The position numbers and the translations under genes were made by a program. A stretch of DNA of 63,973 nucleotides, counting the filler, from Trichosphaerium sp. ATCC 40318 (taxonomy: Eukaryota; Protista; Tubulinea): NCBI GenBank assembly GCA_038496445.1. It is 3 parts of 3 records of this genome, joined end to end, with 100 filler letters (N's around TTAATTAATTAA, not from the genome) between each part and the next. Parts side by side here need not be neighbours in the genome. Positions count along the whole stretch, not along the records: positions 23,672 to 50,853 come from JALMLS010000496.1; 2 more parts are not named here. One strand, given 5' to 3'. Shown in pieces: positions 23,672 through 50,853 of the stretch (within the stretch, counting starts at the first letter, position 1; every line of letters starts with the position of its first letter). The notes under the pieces were generated by a model, which was not told where the DNA came from, made no database searches, and was given only the letters and a program-made list of their open reading frames with translations.

Positions 23672-24768
23672 CAAACCTGTCAAATCAATCATTGAGTTTG
23701 CTTCAAGTGCCTCAAATCATCCATCACTGACAAGTCTTTACCTTGAGTTCAGATTTGGAGTGGTTCTAAAGAATGAAAAAGGTAAAAATACTTTTACTTT
23801 TGTATCCACGTGCAAAAACACGTGCCATTTGGGTTTTATCAAAACTTACTAACCCGTTGTTTTACACAGTGATGAAAGCTTTGTCACATATTGTCCAGAA
23901 TGCAGGACTCTCATTGTTTTCTCTTGAAGTCAAGACTACTCCAGTGTTATCTCAATACGCACATTTGCTTGAAAAGGATTAGGAGAAAACACAACAATAC
24001 AGAATTACGAGGTTCTCAATGTTGCTTCAGAGTCCCTGGCCCTTGTTATAGCAAAAGCATTAAAGACGAATAATACCCTAAAGTATTTGAAACTAAGTCA
24101 CCTCATAGACGATGAAGGCACGCAAATCTTTGCATTGTTTAAAATTTCGTTTTCTTTAGATAGATTTTTTACCCTTCTCAGTGTTAATTTATTAGGATCT
24201 TATGCGCTAGCACAAGCGTTTGAAGAATCCGATACCCTCAAGAATCTAGACATTAGTAGGAACCAGTTGGCAAACAATAAAGCCTTGAAGCAAATAAAGG
24301 ATACAAATAACAGTAGAACGAAAAAAAAACAAGATGGGGTAAAATGAAGGGCTCTCACTTGAGAAGTGCTAAAGCGAAAAAAGAGCCAGTAAGCAGTTTG
24401 TCCTTTAGCGAGTCAGCTTCTGTAGAACAAGAAGATCATGTTACCAACATTATAAAGGCTGAATGTAAAGGAACAAAGGATACTGCTGAGAGCAAGAAGG
24501 TAAAAGATGAAAGCTTGAGTGCTAGTACAGTATCAAAGAAAGAAGAGAGTTATTCATCACACAACAATAGAACTAATTCAGTTGCAGACTACGAAACTGT
24601 TTCACCTTACCTTGAAGCTAATGAACAAAGTGTGATTAGTAAGATGCAGGATAGGATAAATAACTTGGAATCACAAGTTCAATCATTGGCCAAACTAAGT
24701 ATGAACCTTCAAGAACAATGCACAGAATTAAATGAGAAATTAAAAGTTTGATGGAAGAAAGGGATTAA
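23672..24768 (+). pseudogene. 3' part of an RNI-like LRR/coiled-coil gene; inverted paralogue of 26464-28559, with frameshifts
   Basis: KPVKSIIEFASSASNHPSLTSLYLEFRFG and KKEESYSSHNNRTNSVADYE..MQDRINNLESQVQSLAKL are shared with the minus-strand copy, including intron positions. Frameshifts at ~23978, ~24325 and ~24748. Confidence 0.75.
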
Positions 24769-26463: not shown

Positions 26464-28559
26464 TTATTGATCCCTTTCCGCCATTAACAACTCTACTTTT
26501 TCTTGAAGGTTCATACTTAGTTTGGCTAATGATTGAACTTGTGATTCCAAGTTATTTATCCTATCCTGCATCTTACTAATCACGCTTTGTTCATTAGCTT
26601 CAAGGTAAGGTGAAGCAGCTTCGTAGTCTGCAACTGAATTAGTTCTATTGTTGTGTGATGAATAACTCTCTTCTTTCTTTGATAATGGACTAGCACTCAA
26701 GCTTTCATCTGATAATGGACTAGCACTCAAGCTTTCATCTTTTGCCCTCTTGCTCTCAGCAGCTTCCTTTTTGAGTGCTTCACGAAATTCTTTGGCCTTT
26801 TTTAAGGCATCAAGTTCATCCCTTCTAATTCTAGCCGCTTGTTCTTCATCCACAGATTCACTTGACGAAGATGCGGACATGCGAAATTTTTTTTTCGACT
26901 TTACATCACTAGTTTTCTTGCCCTTTAGAGCCCACGTAGTTTTTTTCTCTCGGTTATTATTTGTCACCCTGATTCGATCCAAGGCTTTATTGTTTGCCAG
27001 TTCATTCTGTGTAATATCTACATTCTTGAGGGTCTCGGATTCCTCAAATACTTTCGCTAGTGCAAAAGAACCTAATATTAAAAACAATAAGTCAACGTTT
27101 AGGTTGAAAACTAACTATCAAAACAAAGCAGAGATTTGCGTGCCTTCATCGTCTATGAGACGATTTAGTTTCAGATACCTTAGGGTATTATTCGTCTTTA
27201 ATGCTTTTGCTATAACCAGAGCCAAATACTCTGAAGCAACATTGAGAACTTCGAAATTCTGTATTGTTGTGTTTTCTGCTAGAGCTTGTCCAAGCAAGTG
27301 TATATGTCGACATAATATTGGATTCATCTTGACTTCAAGAGAAAACAATAATAGCCCTGCATTCTGGACAATATGTGATAAAGCTTTCATCACTGTGTAA
27401 AACAACACGGTTAGCAAGTTTTGATAAAAACCAAAATGACACGTGTTTTTGCACGTGGATACAAAAAGTAAAGTATTTACCTTTTTCATTCTTTAAAACC
27501 ACTCCAAATCTGAACTCAAGGTAAAGACTTGTCAGTGATGGATGATTTGAGGCACTTGAAGCAAACTCAATGATTGATTTGACAGGTTTGTCATAAATGT
27601 AAAACACTTCACCAGGGTATGTCCTTCCAGTGTGAGAAATAGATAAAGTCTCAAGTTTCGAGAATCCAGGAGATGCAAGAAGCTCTGCAATATGAAAGAA
27701 ACCGTCTCCTTCAACACCCTCAAGTGTCAACCGCTTGAGTTTGGGACACTTTGCTGTAGCAAACATTTTCAAATGGTTTTTGGTGATGATTGGTTTATCA
27801 CGTGCTTTGGCCAAGAAGTGCAGATCTTTTAGCTTTGGAGGGAAGTTATTTCCAAGTACTAAGAATAGATTGTAAGGGCAAGCAAGTAAAATAAGCTCTG
27901 AATATTCAAAACAACAAAAACAAAAACTCTTTCCAAAAAGAAACTATAACGTGCTCTAGTTAGTTGTCACGTGCCTTCAAATAGTTTGTTGAGATTACAA
28001 TGTTTGTCCAATTCAATGAGTGATAGAGATTTGAGTCTGCTGTGTAGATTATTGACTAAGAGGTCCAAACAAGGCTAACAGAAGTAAGAAACAAAGAAGA
28101 AGACTCTTTTAAAACGAATTAAGAGAAAGCACAAAAACAATACCATATACGTGACATTCCATCCATACGATCGTCCTAAGCCTGATGGGTGTATTACTAC
28201 ATCGTCTACTCTACTTTCACCCTAGTTTTGGTTTAATTTTCTGTTGTAATGTGTAGAACCACTACTGGCGGTCGTGATAGCGCATGTTATCGCGTAAGAA
28301 AGCTGTTACAGCTTGTCAAAAACTGGAAATCAAGCAAACTGTTTTAACGCGCTTTAAAAACGCCTGTATATCAATAAATACAACTTACCAGAGCTTTGAT
28401 AAACTGTTCGCGCTGTTTTGAGGTGCTCGTTCCAACAAAGCAACGAATTTCCTGTGGTACACCTCTCTTTGTGTTAATCGACGTGATTTCGCCTTGAGTG
28501 AGCATTCGACACAGTTTCTGGCATCTTCTTTTGTTTACTTGCTTGTATGACTCAGCCAT
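26464..28559 (-). CDS. RNI-like leucine-rich-repeat protein with a C-terminal coiled coil
   Basis: LKRLTLEG, LETLSIS, LTSLYLE, ALAENTTIQ, ALKTNNTLRYLKL..IDDEG|SFALAKVFEESETLKNVDITQNEL. A 30-bp tandem duplication at 26681-26740 encodes DESLSASPLS twice. Confidence 0.8.
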
Positions 28560-29363: not shown

Positions 29364-31801
29364 ATGAACTTTTTTACTGCAACTATACTACTTGTATTAT
29401 TACAAGTTTCCCTTGTCATTGGTACAGTTTAAACTTACTTGTTATGTAAGTATTCGTAGTTGCTAACCAATAATATTAAGGTCAAGCCAATTGGCAAGAT
29501 GTGCGTACTTTGGGCACTGTTGAAACAATATTAAACAGCACAGCTGCAGAAGGAATATTTGACCCGCAAATTGCTACGGGATTCATTGTACCAAACGCTG
29601 GTCCTTCTGTGTGCATGTTTTTCGCTATTAGAGGACTGTCGGGTGAAAATGGAAAGCGCTCACCAATTGGAGTAGTTGATACTGTAGCTGCAGGCGTAGC
29701 AATTAGTACGTATAACTATGTGACAGGAAAAAAGGAAACAAACGAAAACCGCTCCTAAATGTCGACTTCCACTTAACCGTTTCCGCCTCTGTACGGGCTT
29801 TACGTGCGTAGAAGGGCCAAGGTCGATTACTTGTATGCGTTTCAGGAGGGTTGTGAGGCAAAAAAGCCGAAAACGGCACAATATTCGGCTTTTTTGCCGC
29901 GCAAAGTGGAACAGTTTAAGTGGTAGTCGACAAGAAAAAAAAAGTTCCTCAAACCATTTAATACTTTTACTTTAACCAGTTTTGGGTTTCAATTGTACTT
30001 ACCTTTTTTGGGCAAAGTTGCTTGTATATTTTCATGAGTCTTTATTTACTGTTTTTTCTCTAAGCTTTCCAGACTTCCATTCGACCTATCAGGTTTATGG
30101 ATTCTAGTGGCAACCCTCCTTTGCCAATTGATATAGTGGCTGGACCTAACGAGTTTGCTTTACTTTATTGCGAAGATCCTGATATTATTCTAAAGAAACG
30201 AGGAGAGGAACCACGTTTTACTTGTGAAATGCGGTTTATAACTGGTAATTTAACTGTATGTTTTCTCTTTCTCGTTGATGACTTTACAACTTTACTTACT
30301 TGTTCACGTGTTGTAGGGTTTCGTATTGTCAGATGCATTGGTGCTTAATACTACATCTTTGTTGGGTGATGGTATTGCTTATGATGCAGGTACACGATTT
30401 GTACTGTATATACAACAGCCAACTCAGTCTGACTGACTTTTTTTTTTTGAAAGCACAACTTTATTTTCCATACTTGTTTGATTATGTTCCCTATTAACTT
30501 TCTTTCTTTTTTTGTCGTATAGAGTCCAATGCATACATTGTTAATTACATAGATGATAGTCGTACTTTATTTTCTCTATCAGTTGATGCAGTTACTAAAA
30601 ATGTGACATACCTCCCATTCAACTGTACTATTCTTTTTATCGTACTTTTTTCTTCTTTTTACTAACACTTTTTTTCTTTTGTTTAGATACTTCTGATTCG
30701 ATTCGTTCTGACTTTGCAATTGGTAATGACCATTGTATTGTATCATCTTTTGTACAAGATGCAAGTGACCAAATTATTAAACTCTCAGCAATCAAAAACG
30801 GGATAACTGTACTTAACATATATTTCATTCTATTCAAGCAACTAAAACCATTTTTCTTTAGTACCTTTACGAGCATACTCTTGTCAACATTACAAGTGGT
30901 AGTACTAACTTCATTTCTATGGCATACGATGAAATCTCAGAGCTATTTGCTGTTGTTTATACAGTACAAACAGACACTGAAAAACGAGTGAAAACAATTA
31001 TGTTTGAACTAGCTTGTGAAGAGAATCCAACCGTGAATGTCATTGGCATAGTTGATTATAATACAACAACAGCAGATCCTGCTATCATATCCACACCATC
31101 TTCAACAAATTCTTTTCTCGTGTCATGGCAATTAAATCAGAGTTTTTATGCAGCTTCATTGTCCGATTCGAATCAAGTCACCTCAAGTGTTCTTCCTGCG
31201 CTTCCTTTTGTTAATCACTTTTCCCTTCAAATGACATGGATAGATTTATCAAACGCAACTATTGGAGGTTGTGGTTCAGCTGGAGTACGTAACAATAGCA
31301 CCTAGCCTAAAAATCTCAGATTGTTGAAACGCTGTTTCTTTGCTTATTGTTTATTTATTCCCTTTGTAGATTGTAGTGAAAAGTGACAGGTCCCTTCCTA
31401 TGAATTGCAACTCTACTCTTTTATTTTTAAACGCTAATCCAGATTTCAACTTTATTGAATGTCCTGCTACAGCTCCACCAACGACAAGCCCGCCGACAAC
31501 TGCCATGCCAACCATGACAACAGTACCAACAACTAGTGCTCCAGCAAACCCTACTACAAGCATGCCAACCGCAACTCCAACAACTAGCTCGCCAACTACT
31601 GCTACGCCAACTGTGCCAACAGTACCAACAACTAGTGCTCCGACTACTGTTGCGCCACCAACGGCACCTGTTGCAACCTTAGCGCCAACTGAGACACCCA
31701 CAAGTACTACTACTGACAGTCCAACTGTACGCTCAGGAACTACTCAAACACTATGGAACTTTGCAGTGTTTGTGTGCTCTTTTGTAATCTTTGCTGTATA
31801 A
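29364..31801 (+). CDS. Cell-surface protein: signal peptide, beta-rich ectodomain, Pro/Thr stalk, hydrophobic (GPI- or TM-like) C-terminus
   Basis: MNFFTATILLVLLQVSLVIG start; multiple short-intron exons; PATAPPTTSPPTT.. stalk; ends LWNFAVFVCSFVIFAV*. Confidence 0.7.
29760..29932. repeat. Intronic foldback element (MITE relic or structured RNA)
   Basis: TGTCGACTTCCACTTAACCGTTTCC / GGAACAGTTTAAGTGGTAGTCGACA imperfect 25-bp terminal inverted repeat, plus an internal perfect 15-bp stem (29857-29871 with 29884-29898). Confidence 0.75.
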
Positions 31802-33583: not shown

Positions 33584-35554
33584 ATGAGTAAACGAAAGAC
33601 TACAGGCACTGGTTAGTATAGCACGATTTTGTGTTTTTAACAGCAGATTAATTTTAAACAATACTCTAGGCACTGCCAGACCGCCTAAGAAGCGAAAAAC
33701 GAATGCAAAATTTGATCCAATTGTTCTGTATGATATGTTAAGCGATCGGAACGAGCAGCTCGCTCAATGGACCTCAGACGATAGTTTTCGTTTAGAATAC
33801 AGCAAAAAAGGTACATTAATTAAATTATAACAACGACACGCGCTTTCCTTACGTAAATATCCTCTAAAGCTAACGTTAGTAGTTCCTGGGTCAGCTCCTC
33901 TCTCACAATTGATTGGTGGTGCTAAAAATCTTTCGTACTACGGATTCAGTAAGATAGAAGGACGAGACGACTGGTAACGCCTTTATTTGCTTTACAGAGT
34001 CTTTGTTTTTAACAATTGTAACATAAATTATTTCTAAGTTTGTTAAAAGGTTTCATCTGCTCGTAGAGAAGGACACAGGAAAGCGTGTATTCCGTCAGCA
34101 TAACAGAGATGATATAGGTGCAAAGGTAAACGACATTTTGGAGTTTTCTTTGAAATTTAAAAAATTTTACGCCTAACACTTTTTAAACAAGATACAACGT
34201 GCAGCTATGAAACACTATGAACCTGCTGGGTACGTTTACAATAAATACATTAAGATAAAATGCAATGACTTGTCAAATTACAAAAGTTTTCTTCTAATTT
34301 TTTTTTTGATGATGTTCACGTTTGTTACAATGTATTATTTCTTACTCGATTTTTAGCACTATAATTGAAGAAAAATATAGCGCTTATGATCCGTTACAGT
34401 ATTTATCTATTACACATTCTAGTAATCTTGTCGCTGGGATGCATGTTAACGCAAACGATGGCGATGTTTTAACGCTTCGGATGAAAATAAATAACCTTGA
34501 AGGAGAACTTAATACAGTAAAGGCTAAGCTTGCCAAGAAGGAGAGTGAGGTTGATATTTGGAAAGATCAGTGTTATGCGCTACTTCGCAAAAATAATGAC
34601 ACAAACGGCACACAACAAGTGAGTATACAATCATGATTTGTTTCACAAAAAAATTTTCCTTTTTGTAATTTTTTTTTTTAGAACGGACTTGCAAATACTG
34701 GTGAGTCAATTGCATTACCTGACGCGAAAGTATCCTTAGCCCCTGAAGATAATATATATGAATGCCCTATTTGTTGTGATATGACACATCTTAACGAACT
34801 TCGCGGATTTGGTTGTGGTCATCACTGTACGTTTAAGAAAATCAAAAAAAAATTTTGAAAACTCTCCACGTTTCGAAGAAAAGTAAGGCTCGCTGTTCAG
34901 GGACTGGAGTCTTTTTTGAATTTTTTTAAATTATGCTTACACGTGCTTTTTAATAAATAGGTTGCCGATCGTGCTTGAAGACTTACATTTCAAAACAAAT
35001 CGCAAATCGAGCTATTCCTATTAGATGCCCTTTCCCTTGTGATCACGAAATTCAACAAGGTGAAATCACATGCCATATTGATCCACAACAATATAAACAA
35101 TATATGGCCGCTGTACACGACTCATTGGTTATGCGTAGTGATGACCTAGTGTACGTACAAACAAATCAAAAATTATTACCAAAAGCTTACCATGTTACTA
35201 AACAGGTATTGTCCTACTCCTGATTGTGACCAAGTTGTTCAATGGGATAAAGATCGCAACCCACGACTTCAATGCCAAAAATGTTGCAACACATGGTGCC
35301 TCCTATGCAAAGTACCTTGGCATGATGGTCTCACATGTCAAGAGTATCAAGCTTTCTCGTTTCCTCCACCATTAGATCCAGAACCACTTGATCTTAATAT
35401 CGGTGATGGTGGGTTTGTTACTTGTGCTTGTGGTACTTGGTTGGAGTATACATCTGGCTGTTATGTTGTCACTTGTATTTGTGGTAGAAGAGTTTGTGGC
35501 AAGTGTGGTAAGGTTGTCGAGCCTGGAAACACTTGCTCTCACACCACGTGGTGA
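33584..35554 (+). CDS. HSF-type DNA-binding domain + coiled coil + RBR (RING1-IBR-RING2) E3 ubiquitin ligase
   Basis: NLS-like PPKKRK; LYDMLSD..AQWTSDDSFRL..NLSYYGFSKI..VFRQHNRDDIGAKIQR; coiled coil LRMKINNLEGEL..; CPICC..CGHHCCRSC..IRCPFPC; YCPTPDC..CQKC..WCLLCKVPWHDGLTC; CACGTWLEYTSGCYVVTCICG..CGKC. All splice junctions checked stay in frame. Confidence 0.8.
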
Positions 35555-38328: not shown

Positions 38329-38838
38329 ATGCAACGCCTTATCATCCTTGCCGCTGTTCTATCTGTAGCCATTGCACTCACCGCTACCAGTTGCGACTTT
38401 AAATGCGCTCGCAAGCACGTAACATGCCAGAAAGCCGATATCGCTCCAGGAGTATGCTCTAACCAACAAGAACACTGTGTAAAGCAGTGCAACAACGGTC
38501 TTCCATCAACAAACGATAAACTCAACATGCTCATTAAATCCCAAGACGACCCTGACAAAGACTTGCTTTGCGTAATACCTTGTGTATTCGAAGGTTTAAT
38601 TTGTGAGCAAGCATTCAGCAGCAACAGTTCAATCTGCCGGAGAGCTTGGGGTGCATGTATTAAGTTCATGGGATGCGGAAGCGCTGTCCCAACAGTAGCA
38701 CCTGTAGAACGCATTGCTGAAGGCAACCCAAAATGCAAGCATGCTTGCCTTTTGCTAAAAGAGAAATGTATCAACCTTGGCTACAAACCAGAAGTCTGTA
38801 ACGCAGTAAAACAAACCTGTGATGAACAGTGTCTTTAA
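38329..38838 (+). CDS. Small secreted cysteine-rich protein, intronless
   Basis: 169-aa ORF with signal peptide MQRLIILAAVLSVAIALT and repeated CxxxC(x6)C(x8)C(x6)CxxxC-type modules. Confidence 0.75.
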   Translation: MQRLIILAAVLSVAIALTATSCDFKCARKHVTCQKADIAPGVCSNQQEHCVKQCNNGLPSTNDKLNMLIKSQDDPDKDLLCVIPCVFEGLICEQAFSSNSSICRRAWGACIKFMGCGSAVPTVAPVERIAEGNPKCKHACLLLKEKCINLGYKPEVCNAVKQTCDEQCL

Positions 38839-43070: not shown

Positions 43071-43776
43071 ATGACAGATCATCAAGAATTAGCTAGGGCG
43101 TTTGGTATGACAATAGATTGGGTAGACGGCGGTTTATTTCCTGATTACCAAGATAGAGACGGTACGTACCACCTTACTCGTTTGATGTGCATGTAATTAC
43201 AAAATAAGGCTAACCATGTTTTTTACAGGCGATATTGTGACGAGGGATAAATTAGAACATGCTTCACAAGTTGTTTTGAGCATTCTAAGCAACGAAGATC
43301 AAATCATGGCAGCTTTTGTCGCTGTGGCAAGTGAAAGGCCTAGAAAGAAGAGGAGGAGGAATAATAGAAGGAAAAGAGATAGAGATAGACACACTCAACC
43401 AGTACGTATCATAATCACGTGAAGAGAAAGCAATCTTTTAATGACATCCTTGAAAAACATTCATTGAAAATACTTACCTTTTTTTTAGATTACAGTCACT
43501 GTAGACTTTGCACGTGCGAGGAAAAAAGTATCACGTGTCAGATTACAACGTGTTAGACGTGGTCGCACAAATTATAATGGTGACCGTATCGAGGTATTCG
43601 GAGAGAGTGACGAAAGAACGATTTGGATCAGAGAAATAGAGATGAACGACGAGGATCTTGTAGGCACATTGCTGCATGAGGCTATACATTTCATTGGAAG
43701 ATTTAATGGTAGAGAAATGAGTGAAAGAAGAGAACATCGCGTTATGCAATTACTTGGGGAAGACTGTGAGCTCTAA
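43071..43776 (+). CDS. Small basic protein with an HExxH zincin motif (SprT/minigluzincin-like)
   Basis: Three exons; RPRKKRRRNNRRKR basic stretch; VFGESDERTIWI..DLVGTLLHEAIHF..MSEREEHRVMQLLG. TAA at 43774-43776. Confidence 0.7.
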
Positions 43777-43871
43777 TACAGACAAAAAAACAAAACAAGC
43801 GAAGATATCCAATTGTGAATAAAACCAACACCTTATTTATTAAAAAGTGACGATTAGTTTTGTCAAATTTT

Positions 43872-46800
43872 TTAGTTTGCACGTTGTTCTTTCTTTGATA
43901 TTTTTTGGTCCCAGTTGGGTATTGTGAACCTTTAAAACTCTTTATCTAATCGCAAACTAGAACACTGCATATTGAAAATAGGGATTTGAAGCAGCAGTCA
44001 ACAATAAAAAAGCGACGACAAGAGAAAACAAACAACACAAATCAAAAGAGAACTTTAACTTGATCCTTCTTTTTTTTTTTTGATTATGCTACAATATAAA
44101 CTTTATTTTACCTCTACCTATGGTACCCTTCCCCAAAAAGTTCTTTGAGGCACGTCTATCACCTGAAGGCTTTTTATAAGAATCCCATGCAGAATTAGTT
44201 CGTTTATGTCTTTTTTGCTTTTGTGGCTGAGGTGATGGTTCAGGTGCAAGTTCAGCTTCTGAAACTGACTCTTCTTCGTCCTCAATATAATCCTCGTTTT
44301 TACGAACTTTTACAATATATACAGGCAATATAAGAGAGTCTACAGAAACAGTAAGTCGCATGTCAAGTGTAGCTTCAAGAAGAAAAAAAGGCGACAAAAA
44401 AATGTATCCCATTTGGGCTTCGTATTTTGTTCTTTAGTCTCGTGGTCACCACGAAGAGTTTTTGTACTGTTTTTGAATTTTGAAAAATGTGACAAGAGCA
44501 AAACAACTCTCATCACATGGATGGAGAGTGAAAGGCGGTTAAGTCAACGTACAATCGAACATCACAATTTCGTTTGGAAGTGATTGTTTTGCCCATTTTG
44601 CTGGAAGTCCTTCTTCATTTACTACAGCATAATGTGATTGGTATCCAGCCTTTACATCAGCGCCAACCAGAGATTGTTTACCCTGTGGATCTTCCACAGC
44701 AGGATATACATTACCTGGAGCAGCATACTAAAAAAACCTGTGTTAGTTTGTCGCTTCATTTCTCAAACTAGCCGTCTTTTATAAAGCTTATAAGCTTTGT
44801 TTAGATAACGTAGTATGTGGGAAGTACGCATAACTAATTTCTTGGTATTTTGTGTAGCTGGTTTGGAAAGAGCAAAAAAAAGAAAAATCTAATTTTTTTT
44901 GGTTGATAGGTGACTTGACGGTCACTTTTGTCAACATGTAGGTTGACAAAGTGAAATAAAGTTACTTACACATATAACCATAGTATTGCAGTCACCTTCT
45001 GGAATATTTCTCTGGGCATAATTGGCAGAGGTAGTCAAGTAAACGCCTTCTCCATATGAACCTAAATAAAAAATTTCAGTATTTTGTATTGATCATCTGG
45101 TACCACCGGAAGAATCAGGTATATCAAATCCCGATTGAGCTATCTCTATAGCCATATCATAAGAGCAACAATGAACAGCAGGAAATATAGGTATATCGTA
45201 TTGACCAATATATTTGTTCCAATCCGTATTTTTTACAAGATTATCATAATTCTCCATTACTTGTTTACGACGTTCAATTATATCTGTTGGTTCTTGTTCA
45301 TTTGTTTTCCAAGTATCTAATTTAAAGAATTTTGGGAAACATCTATGACTTGTTGCCAAGTTTTGTTTCTGGAATTGAAAAAAAAGTAAGAAAAACACGT
45401 GATTTTTTTGTAAAAGTTTGGTTAGGGTGTTGTACCGCTTGTTCAAACTCTTTTAGTAAGTGTTCGTTATAAATTGCCTCAGCAGATACTATTTCTAAAC
45501 CTCTACCGCCCATGTTCTTTAGGAGACCATTTAACCTCTTGAGTTCGTAAGGTTGTTGAACCTTTATGTCCAAGTCAGTTTTTTTTGGTTCACGATGAGT
45601 AGTATGTTTTTATTTGTACCTCTTCGTCTCTTTTCACGTGACAAGTTTTATACTCATTAGTAGAATGGCCAACAACCCTCCATAGTCCATATGTGAGGAA
45701 GTTATCTGAGAATTTCCTAAATGACGTATTTGATTAGGAACTTAACTAGTTTTAGTTCAGTTTCGTTCTCGCACCATGGGAACAGTGAACTTCCTAGAGA
45801 CCACCATGGAGAACCCTTTTTAGGCTCACACTTTGCTTGTAGGGTTGTAACATATCTGGCATAATCTAAAAGGAAGAATAAGCTTTCAAAGCGAGGTAAC
45901 GTTGATGCTTTTAAACAGTACGTACTTGCTTTGAGTTTGGTTGTCTTTTCAAGTATTTTTTTATGTTCGTGTTCAGGAACAAGCATTCTCTCCAAGTCCT
46001 CTTTGCGTAGATCAAGAAATTGCAAACCGCTAATACCATTAGACAAGCCAACATCAAAAAAAAAGCTCAAGCACGTGCTGCGCATGCATTGTTTTTCGGA
46101 AAAACTGGAAAAACTTTATATCCAAAAATCTGTGAATAAATGTTTTTTCATCGTACGTAATATTGTTGCTTTGAAAAATCTTTGCAGCATTAGGAGATAT
46201 TGGTGAAACAACGCTAAAAACATCTTTAACACGCATAAAAGGAGGAGCAAGCTTCTTCCTCTTAATCTTCTTAACAGCAACTTCAACTTCAAGCTCAATA
46301 CCTCTGAACGTCTTAAGAACGCCCTTACCAACATCACGTTCCCATGAAGCATATACAGTACCCAATTTAGGTAAGTAAAGAGCACCAAAACCGTGTTGAA
46401 GGTTTGAAGCCCATTGACCTGAATACTTGATGCCATCGGAGTATTCAAAGAATCCTTGACCATGTTTGAGATCTTTAACCCATTCTCCAACATATCTAGC
46501 ACCGACTAGAAGCGTCATTGTACCATATCCATGCTTTTTATCTTGTTTCCATTTACCAACATATGTACAACCATTTGCTACTTTCAGTGTACCCTCTCCT
46601 TCACGCTTACCCATGACATAATCTCCTTTATACTCAGCGCCGTCAGGCCAAGTGAAGAGACCTTTACCATTGTACTTTCCTTGATTCCATTGTCCAGTAT
46701 ACACAGACCCATCGGCGAAACAGAATGTTCCCAAGCCGTGCCTTTTATCATGTTGGTACTGACCAACATACGAAGCACCTCTACTTCCAGTATAAGATCC

Positions 46801-49800
46801 TTCTCCATGTCGTTTACCATCAAGCCATTCTCCCAAGTAGGTTCCTCTTTGAGCGTACGCCGCTGTACCTACGCCATTAGGTTTACCATTCTTTATCTGA
46901 CCTTTGTATACCCACCACCGGTACTTGATCGTTCCGCCTCTGTTTTAAAAAATCACGTGTAAGTTCACGTGATTAAATAGGAAAAATGTACTTACGTTGC
47001 GCCTTGGAATTTCCAAACTCGTTTTGATTTTCGAAGTCTTTCTTTTTGTGCTATAACTAGTCTTGATGACTTCTGAAGTACATTCTTCTTTTTCTTTATT
47101 GTAGATGCTCTTGTCATTGTCTTTGTTATTCTGTTGTTAACGCGGCGTTCCATTGAAAGTCTATAGACCTCTCTTTGAGCCTTAAACACTGGTGAGAAGG
47201 AGAATTACTACAAACCAAATGCTTTGGCTTGTTTTCTACTAGTTGTTACCTTTACTTCATCTACCTTGCTCTTCTTCTCTTCACCCTCAGGTCTAGGTAC
47301 AGCTGCGCTTTCAAATCGTTTTCTTTCCTGTTCTTCTTGAGCCTGACGTGTTTGTTAAAAAAACAATCAAAATTTTTTAAACGAAAATGTTGTGCCTTGC
47401 GAGCTTGTTCTTTTTGTCTTTCTTGTTCTTCTCTTTCTTTTTGTTCTTGTTCTCTCCGCCGTCTCTCTTCTTCTACTCTCGCTTTTTCAGCTTCTGCCCG
47501 TTGTTTTTCTTTGGCTTTTCTTCGTTGACGCTCAGCTTCCTCTCTTCGTTGTTTCTCTTCTAGTTCTCGCTTTCTAAGAATATCTTGCCTTCGTTTTTCT
47601 TGCCTTTCCTGAAGATACATTAACGTCGGTTAAACTGTGGTTGAAATAGTACCTGAACTAGATATTCACATAACCTAACGGCAACGTATCTTCTACATAG
47701 ACTCTGAAGATATACAGAAGCGTGGTGTCGAGCAACGGCCGATTTTACTCTTTTTCTACATAGAAAACCTCTCACAACTTTTTGGATCTTGATGGCATAT
47801 GGCTCCATGCACTCTGCACGAAGCTCTTCAAGTACTTCCAGCTGTTGAGTAAAAATTAGTACATAAAGAATATTTACTTAGAGTGTTGATAGTACCGCTT
47901 CATGGCGAAGAAAAGCCTTTGTTTTACCAATCTGACAATCCTTTTTTTTCAAACCAGCAGCTTTCATTATCTTTCTGCAAGTCCTCTTTATATCCCTAGA
48001 TTTACGACTTGCAACAATACCAAACCTTTGGTAAAAGATTTAGTACGAAATACGAAAATTAGAATAATACCTGTGCGTGAAGACATCGAAATCCAAACGT
48101 ATTGGATATCCTGATTGTCTTATTTTTATTGTTTCTAAAACACCAGAACAACTTAGTTGCTCAAGCACTTGTCCACCATGAAAAACATTTGGTGCTCTGT
48201 AACGATTAGGTTTAATACACCTACGAGTATATTTAGATCACATTCTTTCACGTCAGCGAAAATTACCTGATCCAATGAGGATCTGTCTCATTAACAGTTT
48301 CCATCAAATCATCGAGTTGAAACTAGAAACAAACATTAAACAAAGAAGATATTGTCAAATATCTAAGTACCTTAAACTGTGTTCCTACTGTAATTGGTTT
48401 GCCACGTATGACTTCAGCGGTCTTTATAAGGTTTTTAATATACGGATCAGTGCTATGTCTTGTCATGGTGACAATGTCTGGCTTTAAGGCGTCTTTGTTT
48501 TTATCCAAAAAGCCTTTTGCACTGTACATTACCTTAAAAGCCAGTTAAGATAACAGAGGTTTCTGTTGGTTGAAGTTGGTACGTACACGTTCAGCATAGT
48601 GAGATATTCCAAAGTTACCATTAGATATCTTTGGAGAAAGGAAAGAGTCATGAGATTCATGTTGACCTTTAATCTTATTCAAAAAAGAAGTATCTGTTCC
48701 TTTTGGAAAAGTGCACTCCTCGTTAAGTAGTTCTAGTACACTTGCATGCTAACGTGAACAGTAAGTAATGAAGACAAAAGAGGTTCTATTATGGTTTTCA
48801 TAAAACGTACACCATGAGCAATGAGATCAAGTGTTTTTTGGTTGTCATCAAAGGGAATTGCTTGAAAATTTATGCCTTCTTTTTGACATGCTTCAAGTTC
48901 CCATTTGAAGTTATGTCGATTGTAATGTTGCTGGAAGGTCTCATTCGCGAAATTAATACAAAATTGCTCAAAACTGTTGGCCTAAAGAAGAAATCTTAGA
49001 GTCAGACATGGTCACGTCAACACAAAAAAAAAGTTGGTTGATGCAACTTACCTTGAAATTCTCGAAACCAAAAATATCCAAGAGCCCAATAAATAACTGA
49101 CTATTTGTATTATTTATAGTGTTATTAATCTTTACTACTATCCAGTCGAATAAATTACTGTACAAAGCTTTTGAAAGGACATCTCTGACATCAACAGCCT
49201 AAAACACAAGTTTAATTTTAAATCAGATTTCATTCTTTTGAAGTACTTGTGAGGCCGAGTACGGCACTATATACACTTCTTTTGCTATAACATTACGTCT
49301 TGTGAGCAAAATAGATTGAAGCTCTGTTGGATCTACACATAGTAGCTTCGCAACAATAAATACAATCTCAGGATTTTCTACTTGAGCCTAAACCAAAACT
49401 TGTAAAGTGTTGTTTCCAACGTATTTTTTTCGTACTTCCTCCTTCTCTGAAGAACCGATATTTAGATTACCCAGATGAAGGATAGCGGATAATACCCTGA
49501 AAATAAAATCCCTCTCCTCTTTTCCAATATTAATACGAGCCATAGCAGAGATGACTTGTTTCAGTTCTTTCTATTCGAGAAAAAAAAAATGAGCAAAAAA
49601 AGTCACGTGATTTAAGGACAAAGTACTTCTTCATTGCGTCCTTGAATCATCACACATCCACTACCGTTAAGGTACCGATAGTCTCCGACTCTTTTAAGGT
49701 TATATCGCATCCTTTGCTGCACGTAAGACAAAAGAATAAAGAAAAAAAAGATCTACTCACTTAAATTCAGCATCAGTTGAAGCCAACATCATATAAAAAA

Positions 49801-50853
49801 TATGATAATTACGCTCGCCATGACCTTGATTGATAACACGTGTCTAGAAGATATGGGTAAAAACAAAAAAAAACTCACAAAACAAAAAGAAAAAGTTTTT
49901 CAGCCAATCCTTCGTGTGACTGTCCCCTCCACGTGCCTACCTTTTCCAGCAAGTAATTATCAATCCTTGCACCTACCAAGCCACCCTGTCTATCAAATTG
50001 TAGTCGTATAAACTTCCCCTACAATTAAAAAAAATTGTCAACACTTTTTTTGGGTATTTAATCATTTTCACTCACAAAGCGACTGGAGTTATCGTTTTTA
50101 GCAGTCTTCGCATTACCTAAAATAGGGTTAATATATCTACATAAATATGGACCTTACCAAACGCTTCGAGTATTGGGTTTGTGCCTTGGATTTGGGCGCA
50201 TATTTTGTTTCCTTTTGAATCAGAACTGCCAACGAACGACAAGTACTTCATAGCGATTTTTGCTGTTTCGGTCTACATTGAACAACTTAGAACCCATTAC
50301 CGCGCTCTCTTTATAGTCTATCATTACCTTTCCCGCGCCAGACTCTCCACTAATCAAAATAGCTTGGGACTTTGTATCTAAATAATCTTAGCAGTGACAT
50401 TGTCGAAAACGGTGCGAACCTCTTAGTAAGTTAACGTAGCACCTATCCGCTAAAGCAAAAATGTGTGGCTTCTCTTCTCCATGTGACTTATTTCTATAAC
50501 TACAAATACAAGTTAAAACGCATTAAAACTAACCTATAAGGCGGTATACGCACGTTTTCATTGTTTTGTCATCGTACAATGGTAATTGTTTAAAAGGATT
50601 AACAGCAATTACAATACGCCCTGTGTATGTCTACAAAACGACGCTTTGAATAAGATTTTCACGTGATATGACGGTTCAGCGCACGTATATAATATCCTTT
50701 AAATATCTCTGTCTTATATTGTGTAATACAGTAGATGCATGAAGTTCTGAGAGGTACAGCATATCCTCTACGTCTCTAAGCACTGATTTGTCCAAAATTT
50801 TTCTAACATGAGCTTTTTGTACTTCTATTTTTTTCTATTCGTTTTAATCTCTT
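43872..50853 (-). CDS. Unconventional myosin: motor-IQ-charged helix-MORN repeats-SAM-PARP-like ART domain (5' end lost at the gap; last exon uncertain)
   Basis: [74 protein letters not shown]; IQ motifs IQKVVRGF; ER/K helix; 7-8 MORN repeats YxGxWxxxKxHGxG; SAM-like [17 protein letters not shown]; ART-like [32 protein letters not shown]. Confidence 0.88.

Follow-up and report, generated by a model that had tools for sequence, protein, structure and literature searches.

The tail of a myosin decides the role of its motor, and several classes are known in which the same chain also carries an enzyme: class IX has a RhoGAP tail, class XVII has a chitin synthase tail, and class III bears a kinase at its N terminus. 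Enzymes of the PARP family are known mainly from nuclear, stress and signalling roles. Here we describe a locus of the protist Trichosphaerium sp. ATCC 40318 (Tubulinea; NCBI GenBank assembly GCA_038496445.1) that, in our judgement, probably encodes an unconventional myosin as one gene, in which the motor is followed by a stretch rich in Glu, Arg and Lys (ER/K stretch), a basic linker, eight MORN repeats, a SAM-like stretch, a Trp-rich segment and a PARP tail. We use the term window for the whole 63,973-nucleotide (nt) stretch of DNA, along which all positions are counted. The genome piece that was analysed covers positions 23672-50853 (JALMLS010000496.1), and its stop-free segments were translated exon by exon.

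MORN repeats and myosins have so far been linked in trans, in that class III myosins interact with MORN4/retinophilin (PMC4379085). Literature searches for a myosin with a MORN, PARP or ADP-ribosyltransferase (ART) tail returned nothing beyond this class III interaction, and database searches, made exon by exon and with the product of a tail transcript, yielded no myosin-PARP fusion. Likewise, the text and supplements of two large myosin surveys mention no MORN, PARP or ADP-ribosylation. An earlier reading of the same DNA, hereafter the initial annotation, had not recognized myosin-MORN-SAM-ART as a described class, and indeed we found no described myosin class with such a tail.

The myosin part and the MORN repeats

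All parts of the locus lie on the minus strand, split over exons with very short introns, and they follow one another in the order motor, two IQ motifs, ER/K stretch, basic linker, eight MORN repeats, SAM-like stretch and ART-like tail. The same order of same-strand exons had been read in the initial annotation, and both the order and the coordinates are borne out. Our RNA data consist of contigs from public runs (X1-X3 among them) and one JGI transcript contig, L001. Because the contigs skip intervals that read CT..AC on the plus strand, which is GT..AG on the strand of the gene, we conclude that they represent spliced RNA. Together these data establish 14 GT-AG introns of 44-70 nt and two longer ones of 213 and 242 nt. 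The 5' end of the gene and its start codon are cut off by the edge of the piece at 50853.

The motor domain occupies many short exons at 47878-50853, where it is recognized by Pfam, by phmmer searches of the PDB and by introns seen in RNA (49388-49435, 48982-49051, 48323-48370, 48221-48266 and 48026-48070). Ten exon translations match Myosin_head (PF00063) and cover profile positions 1-635 of 679, and the ATPase motifs can be read in the exon translations as the P-loop GESGAGK|T, switch I (...|GKF) and switch II DIFGFE. The exons therefore encode what defines the myosin superfamily, a motor that matches the Myosin_head profile along the length of the profile and has all three ATPase motifs intact, their consensus forms being GESGAGKT, NxNSSRFGK and DIxGFE. 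The best PDB matches of the motor exons are motors of myosins XI, V, VII, XV and X, with E values down to 1.9e-14, and are scattered across these classes with no clear winner.

The motor is followed at 47653-47877 by the converter end and two IQ motifs (Pfam, E=2.9e-10), the light-chain binding neck. A separate RNA contig joins this IQ exon to the first ER/K exon (joint 47607|47652), and thus confirms the intron at 47609-47652. The ER/K stretch totals 102 residues, 65% of which are Glu, Arg or Lys, and it falls into two parts, identified by translation, composition and codon usage. For the latter we used a log-likelihood ratio (LLR) derived from the confident exons, with cross-validated controls. 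The first part, 47396-47608, has 71 residues (70% E/R/K), and its LLR is +26 in its own frame and negative in the other two. The second part, 47250-47342 (...KVDEVK), scores +18.0 in its frame and -17.8 and -30 in the others, and no off-frame control reaches +18. Judged by its sequence, the ER/K stretch is likely to form a single alpha-helix.

Further downstream, a basic linker exon at 46996-47072, possibly extending up to 47180, precedes the MORN repeats and is open in a single frame. One RNA contig joins positions 46996-47036 of this exon to the MORN exon across the intron 46940-46995. The MORN exon itself, at 46157-46939 and with RNA contigs on 46515-46939, encodes the eight repeats and a linker of about 60 residues. 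Its MORN assignment is secure, as eight stretches in tandem match PF02493 with E=2e-41 and 137.8 bits, compared to a Pfam cut-off of 22.5. The linker after the repeats is strongly coding (LLR +37.8) up to the joint with the SAM-like part. A word search with the MORN exon returned generic MORN proteins only, and no fragment from the same organism.

The PARP-type tail and its transcript

The distal part of the locus is represented by a single spliced transcript. Contig L001 (JGI sample 3300016894; 1195 nt) matches the window DNA with 97-100% identity and spans eight exons between 45996 and 44066. At the 5' end (45996) the reading frame is still open, and the 3' end, at 44066, falls within an A-rich stretch. 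Since L001 spans this entire interval, the SAM-like exon, the Trp-rich segment, the whole ART-like domain and the stop codon at 44092-44094 are parts of one mRNA. Its product of 388 residues (P0001) differs by one residue from the window's own reading, and independent spliced contigs of runs X1-X3 agree with L001.

In the tail, the SAM-like stretch (45926-46055; 59-63 residues) is followed by a Trp-rich segment at 45620-45865, composed of two exons (45775-45865 and 45620-45716). This segment has no recognized fold, and residues 1-100 of P0001 have no Pfam match. The introns at 45866-45925, 45717-45774 and 45562-45619 are defined by L001. The first four of the five PARP exons lie within 44553-45561, with joints seen in X1-X3 and L001: 45436-45561; 45107-45368, with the catalytic His in the motif HCC; 44970-45061, with GEGVY and SANY; and 44553-44727, with NEIVMFD and the catalytic Glu. 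The last exon, 44092-44339, supplies the final PARP strands and a C-terminal tail of about 65 residues, acidic and then basic, before the stop codon TAG at 44092-44094. The joint 44339|44553 that connects this exon to the preceding one is present in three RNA runs.

Within this region the runs use donors 3 nt apart, as seen in the joints 45059|45102 (X1) and 45059|45105 (X2). The alternative donors at window positions 45102-45107 (minus strand) add or remove one Gly in the SSGG loop, just before the GEGVY of the PARP domain. Downstream of the stop codon, sequence reading places a 3' untranslated region (UTR) at 43836-44091 with a candidate AATAAA at 43836-43841. A convergent open reading frame (ORF) at 43642-43776 on the plus strand stops 316 nt from the stop at 44092 on the minus strand. 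The two 3' UTRs must therefore be short or overlapping, and the genome is compact here.

We regard the SAM assignment as the weakest element of the architecture, a lead only. On the one hand, 21 residues of the stretch match P0021, a MORN+SAM+RING protein, in helices 4-5 of its true SAM domain (BLASTP, E=0.014), and a language-model feature search scores 0.91 to SAM clusters on 151 shared features, fewer than the usual 170. On the other hand, no piece of the locus matches SAM in Pfam at E<=10. The label given in the initial annotation consequently keeps these weak signals in its favor and stays a lead.

By comparison, several methods converge on the fold of the ART-like tail. Against Pfam PARP (PF00644), P0001 scores E=1.5e-5 and 25.1 bits over profile positions 60-198, below the curated cut-off of 26.7. 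In a language-model feature search P0001 places PARP catalytic-domain clusters first, with a score of 0.96 and 18 of 30 hits. A BLASTP comparison with the PARP domain of P0099, a protein to which we return below, gives E=1e-4 and aligns the His, Tyr and Glu residues (H-Y-E) of the catalytic triad. A profile search seeded with P0001 and P0099 yielded 269 matches, most of them in assemblies of transcriptomes and metatranscriptomes (sources lgn, jgi, mmetsp and eukprot), and the best 120 of the 269 all carry PF00644. We cut 95 of these matches to the domain and aligned them with P0001 (alignment A2). When a profile was built from the 95 domains without the query, residues 107-321 of P0001 scored 24.0 bits, compared to 5.5 bits or less for 200 shuffles. 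Identity to the aligned family is 14-25%.

A structural model points in the same direction. AlphaFold2 (AF2) folding of the tail gave a mean confidence (pLDDT) of 74.2 and a pTM of 0.74, under the guidance of alignment A2 and thus of true PARP domains, which is a caveat on the model. With this model, Foldseek retrieves PARP12/14/15/10, TNKS1/2, PARP4, ZC3HAV1 and the TASOR pseudo-PARP with probability 1.0 and E values of about 1e-8. VIA returns Z scores of 16.0-16.6 over 160-181 residues at 2.4-3.1 A, with all PARP matches tied, the top one being the SAM-PARP structure of tankyrase-2 (Z 16.6, 164 residues, 2.4 A). Because the PARP structural hits are all tied, the first rank of TASOR in Foldseek carries no weight. 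The model, built as it is on an alignment of PARP domains, has a PARP-type ART fold.

The triad itself is in place. Residues H194, Y224 and E300 of P0001, which are those of the VHCC, GVYLT and NEIV motifs noted in the initial annotation, fall in alignment columns that hold His in 95 of 95, Tyr in 95 of 95 and Glu in 94 of 95 relatives. Both the Ser and the Tyr of SANY are kept as well, and the loop from GxGxY to the second Tyr is 4 residues shorter than in the relatives. An insertion of about 50 residues, with low pLDDT at model residues 56-67, precedes the strand that carries the His. We conclude that the tail is a genuine PARP catalytic fold with its triad, which we consider established as far as computation, including modeling, allows. 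The initial annotation's call of an ART-like domain with residues in H-Y-E order is thereby upheld by the Pfam match just short of the cut-off, the 95-domain profile, the language model, the modeled structure and the alignment columns alike, and its concern that the tail might lack an ART fold is answered by the profile and structure matches.

Even if the locus were to contain two genes, the MORN-SAM-like-PARP protein would still stand out as a very divergent PARP, both for its lack of detectable close relatives and for the unusual motif HCC at its nicotinamide site. Enzymatic activity is plausible but uncertain, judging from the residues that are kept and lost. The product could be either mono- or poly-ADP-ribose, and the motif HCC in place of H-G-S/T may lower or abolish activity.

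One gene or two

What weighs against a single gene with an active tail is found mainly at two joints, in the departures of the tail from its relatives, and in proteins that carry MORN and PARP domains by themselves. The first joint, at 47073-47249, connects the myosin part to the pre-MORN exon, and it is approached through a change of frame. Since 47250-47342 is coding in a different frame from 47396-47608, an intron must lie in the AT-rich segment 47343-47395, and for this frame switch the donor must be GC or else a GT of very low score. By a splice-site matrix built from the 14 confirmed introns, the only GT-AG choice there, 47336-47382, scores -5.2/-0.8. A candidate GC-AG intron of 53 nt, exactly 47343-47395 (AAG|GCACAACA ... 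GTCAG|GCT), gives a seamless reading after ...QKEQARK and has no RNA support. At its donor, GCACAACA, every position but +2 agrees with GTACAACA, the donor confirmed by RNA at 45435. We therefore consider that the segment is probably a 53-nt intron with a GC donor, bearing in mind that all 14 RNA-confirmed introns of the gene are GT-AG. Two hand-drawn introns, 47336-47382 and 47189-47239, were dropped because of their poor matrix scores.

Beyond this point the frame of 47250-47342 continues into the pre-MORN exon with a sole interruption, a tandem TAG TAA at 47205-47210. Introns with good donors could remove the stop in frame, either from 47249 (6.3) or from 47264 (5.3), to an acceptor at 47181 (1.1) or 47073 (3.2). 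The top-scoring acceptor, 47208 (4.1), keeps the TAA in frame, so that the myosin would terminate after ...KVDEVK. Moreover, more than 50,000 in-frame GT-AG paths cross 46996-47608, and so the existence of one that stays open proves little by itself. The RNA contigs leave 47052-47248 uncovered.

The second joint, at 46054-46156, connects the MORN and SAM-like parts and likewise has no RNA contig, in this case on 45997-46460; scans of metagenomes for a transcript spanning it found none. One option is a 52-nt GT-AG intron, 46105-46156, with good splice scores (7.1/5.2). The frame that it opens has an LLR of -13.6 over 46057-46104, a value lower than that of every true in-frame window. Alternatively, the frame may be offset by one base within a run of nine T residues (T9) at 46056-46064, where the MORN frame meets a TGA at 46054-46056. 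Thus in-frame solutions exist at both joints, and they are not clean. The initial annotation had read the locus as a single myosin-MORN-SAM-ART gene; the exons from the SAM-like stretch to the stop codon are indeed on one mRNA, while RNA crosses neither joint and the splice signals at the first are ambiguous.

Around the T9 run (46054-46064, minus strand) the MORN frame ends CUU UUU UUU UGA, and the frame one base on reads GAU GUU GGC... (DVGLS, in the SAM-like stretch), with codon usage switching frame at about this point. The offset could come from a homopolymer assembled at the wrong length, from a broken allele, or from a +1 shift at the UUU-UGA 'shifty stop'. We think it very unlikely that ribosomes link the MORN and SAM-like parts by shifting +1 at this site. 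The notion that only a frameshift can join them was rejected on account of the canonical 52-nt intron, which codon usage then opposed. Upstream, the frame of the SAM-like part has a single ATG, at 46085, and the stretch that contains it scores as non-coding, which argues against a separate start there.

An arrangement of two same-strand genes that abut or overlap, one for a short-tailed myosin and the other for a MORN-SAM-like-PARP protein, is the main rival, and we rate it as somewhat unlikely. The myosin would end at the TAG/TAA at 47205-47210, either unspliced or after an intron of 42 or 57 nt that ends at 47208, as the pairing of the best acceptor with donors 47249 and 47264 suggests. The second gene would start at ATG 47151, inside the possible extension of the linker exon, or at ATG 47106, with co-transcription or an internal promoter as possibilities. 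The gap in RNA coverage over 47052-47248 agrees with this division, as does the segment 47152-47204 just upstream of ATG 47151, which has no coding signal (LLR 0.4). Standalone proteins of the required kind also exist, in that P0099, P0123 and P0125 share with this tail the order of N-terminal MORN repeats and C-terminal PARP domain, with His, Tyr and Glu aligned. P0099 is a complete standalone ORF, in which a lead of about 45 residues precedes the repeats, compared to about 52 before the first MORN here. No myosin-PARP protein, finally, appeared in the searches or in the text and supplements of the myosin classification papers. Two genes would nevertheless have to fit into very little space, as some 54 nt from the stop to ATG 47151 are too few to hold a 3' UTR and poly(A) site for the first and a promoter and 5' UTR for the second, and the only AATAAA nearby (~47095) is inside the coding region of the second gene. 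A myosin that ended straight after the ER/K helix would lack a cargo-binding part, and the open frame ahead of the tandem stop continues unchanged beyond it.

It is also conceivable that the architecture is as we read it and that the tail is an inactive pseudo-PARP used for binding, or that the assembled copy is broken at T9 so that only the part from motor to MORN is translated. We judge this to be distinctly unlikely, with an estimate that is not exclusive of either number of genes. The Gly after the catalytic His (H-G-S/T), which contacts nicotinamide through its backbone (Gly863 in PARP1), is present in 95 of 95 relatives and is replaced here by Cys195; the next residue is Cys196, where 93 of 95 relatives have Thr or Ser. 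The shortened loop, the Pfam score beneath the curated cut-off, the rank of the TASOR pseudo-PARP as top Foldseek hit and the presence of ZC3HAV1 among the tied VIA hits could all be taken in the same sense, and for a broken copy there are the TGA in the T9 run and the codon usage that opposes the alternative intron. Fast divergence would also fit the lack of close relatives. When the 87-residue His exon was searched with HMMER against 1.84 billion representatives, it found only its own transcript and P0002, and a word search with P0001 found no relatives within proteins of up to 679 residues; no fused orthologue therefore supports the architecture. We regard P0002 (907 residues) as spurious, because it consists of about six near-identical repeats of some 96 residues and looks like a translated repeat, which matched the His exon in six short stretches with a summed E of 3.6e-10. 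Unlike TASOR or PARP13, however, this tail has kept the His, both Tyr residues, the Ser of SANY and the Glu, and its exons are transcribed and correctly spliced, and their frame stays open over 388 codons in a sample of independent origin, with a single amino-acid difference. That the ART-like motifs are a chance resemblance within some other fold is extremely unlikely. Single exons of the tail gave chance matches only in Pfam and in phmmer searches of the PDB, the whole of P0001 has no genuine sequence match in the PDB, and AF2 run on the single sequence reached a pLDDT of just 33. Against this, the PF00644 match, the 24 bits that no shuffle approaches, the language-model score and a Z of 16.6 over 164-174 residues all converge on PARP.

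A single gene for an unconventional myosin with a PARP tail is thus the explanation that we prefer, and the location of all parts on one strand and the continuity of frame around a removable stop favor it. On this explanation in-frame splicing would connect the ER/K exons with the pre-MORN exon, and likewise the MORN exon with the SAM-like one, to give a single polypeptide of roughly 1,700 residues. The motor would move the protein along actin or anchor it there, with the ER/K helix as a rigid spacer, and the MORN repeats would attach it to a membrane or to a partner protein. Self-association, as in tankyrase, may be a role of the SAM-like part, and the PARP domain would use NAD+ to ADP-ribosylate itself or cortical targets nearby. 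The stronger version, in which within one polypeptide the actin motor is active, the MORN repeats anchor the chain to a membrane or partner, the SAM-like module serves self-association and the H-Y-E ART is catalytically competent, is a tentative one to which we give a little less than an even chance. The idea of the initial annotation, a motor that carries ADP-ribosylation along actin or to membranes, is plausible but unproven.

Elsewhere in the genome piece there is a large inverted duplication (23672-24718 and 26497-27590), with six collinear arm pairs of 61-214 nt that are 77-99% complementary. The left arm is cut by the edge of the piece. Within the duplication, an ORF whose C terminus is Ser-rich and coiled-coil-like (...SPYLEANEQSVISKMQDRINNLESQVQSLAKLSMNLQE) occurs twice. 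An ORF at 35192-35554 on the plus strand has two matches to IBR (half-RING; E=4.9e-15) and probably belongs, as one exon, to a gene for a ubiquitin ligase of the RBR type. The other long ORFs of the piece have no Pfam match, including one that is Cys-rich and looks secreted (38329-38838) and one that is Thr/Pro-rich (31376-31801).

Comparison with known myosins and PARP proteins

The initial annotation had compared the tail with the SAM-PARP end of tankyrase, and that comparison is apt, given that tankyrase 2 SAM-PARP is the top structural match, though tied with other PARPs. Tankyrase (PARP5a/5b) has the order ankyrin-SAM-PARP, and shares with this tail a C-terminal H-Y-E PARP domain after a SAM or SAM-like module; the protist PARP family used for our alignment also has a tankyrase-like consensus. 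In the place of the ankyrin repeats, however, MORN repeats are found here, with no Ank match in the exons or in P0001. The SAM and PARP domains of tankyrase are about 20 residues apart, whereas the spacing here is about 90. The motif HCC replaces the HGS of tankyrase, and the N-terminal partner would be a myosin motor.

The standalone MORN+PARP proteins P0099, P0123 and P0125 (345-494 residues, from public transcriptome assemblies of microbial eukaryotes) offer a second point of reference. P0099, the protein of 494 residues, was found through the search with the MORN exon. All three are without myosin and without a SAM-like stretch, they are 20-25% identical to the present tail, and they keep the canonical HGT and SSKSDEY motifs. 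MORN repeats recur with ART or SAM modules in other settings too, namely with SAM_1 and RING in P0021 and with ART (PF01129) in P0096 of the rotifer Rotaria. Even if the locus proved to be two genes, the MORN+PARP combination would be one that recurs in microbial eukaryotes and of which we found no description in the literature searched.

Among myosins, class III shares both a MORN connection and an enzyme, and it differs in each. The MORN protein of class III is a separate adaptor that binds the tail, whereas the repeats here would be in cis, and the class III enzyme is an N-terminal kinase, whereas here it would be a C-terminal ART. Classes IX and XVII embody the same principle, a motor fused to a catalytic tail that is delivered to or anchored at actin-rich sites, and differ in the enzyme. 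Myosins with an ER/K lever (VI, VIIa, X and MyoM) likewise have IQ motifs and then a long E/R/K-rich stretch, which in the present protein is predicted from sequence, but the MyTH4-FERM, PH and cargo-binding domain tails of these myosins are absent here.

If the fusion is real, the locus represents both a new myosin tail architecture and a new context for a PARP domain. Were the chain also to combine an active motor with a competent enzyme, it would make a new kind of myosin that targets ADP-ribosylation to membranes or to sites rich in actin, and the first case of a PARP-family enzyme borne by a cytoskeletal motor. Such a protein would link the myosin and PARP fields, and would offer a natural system for probing localized ADP-ribosylation at the cell cortex.

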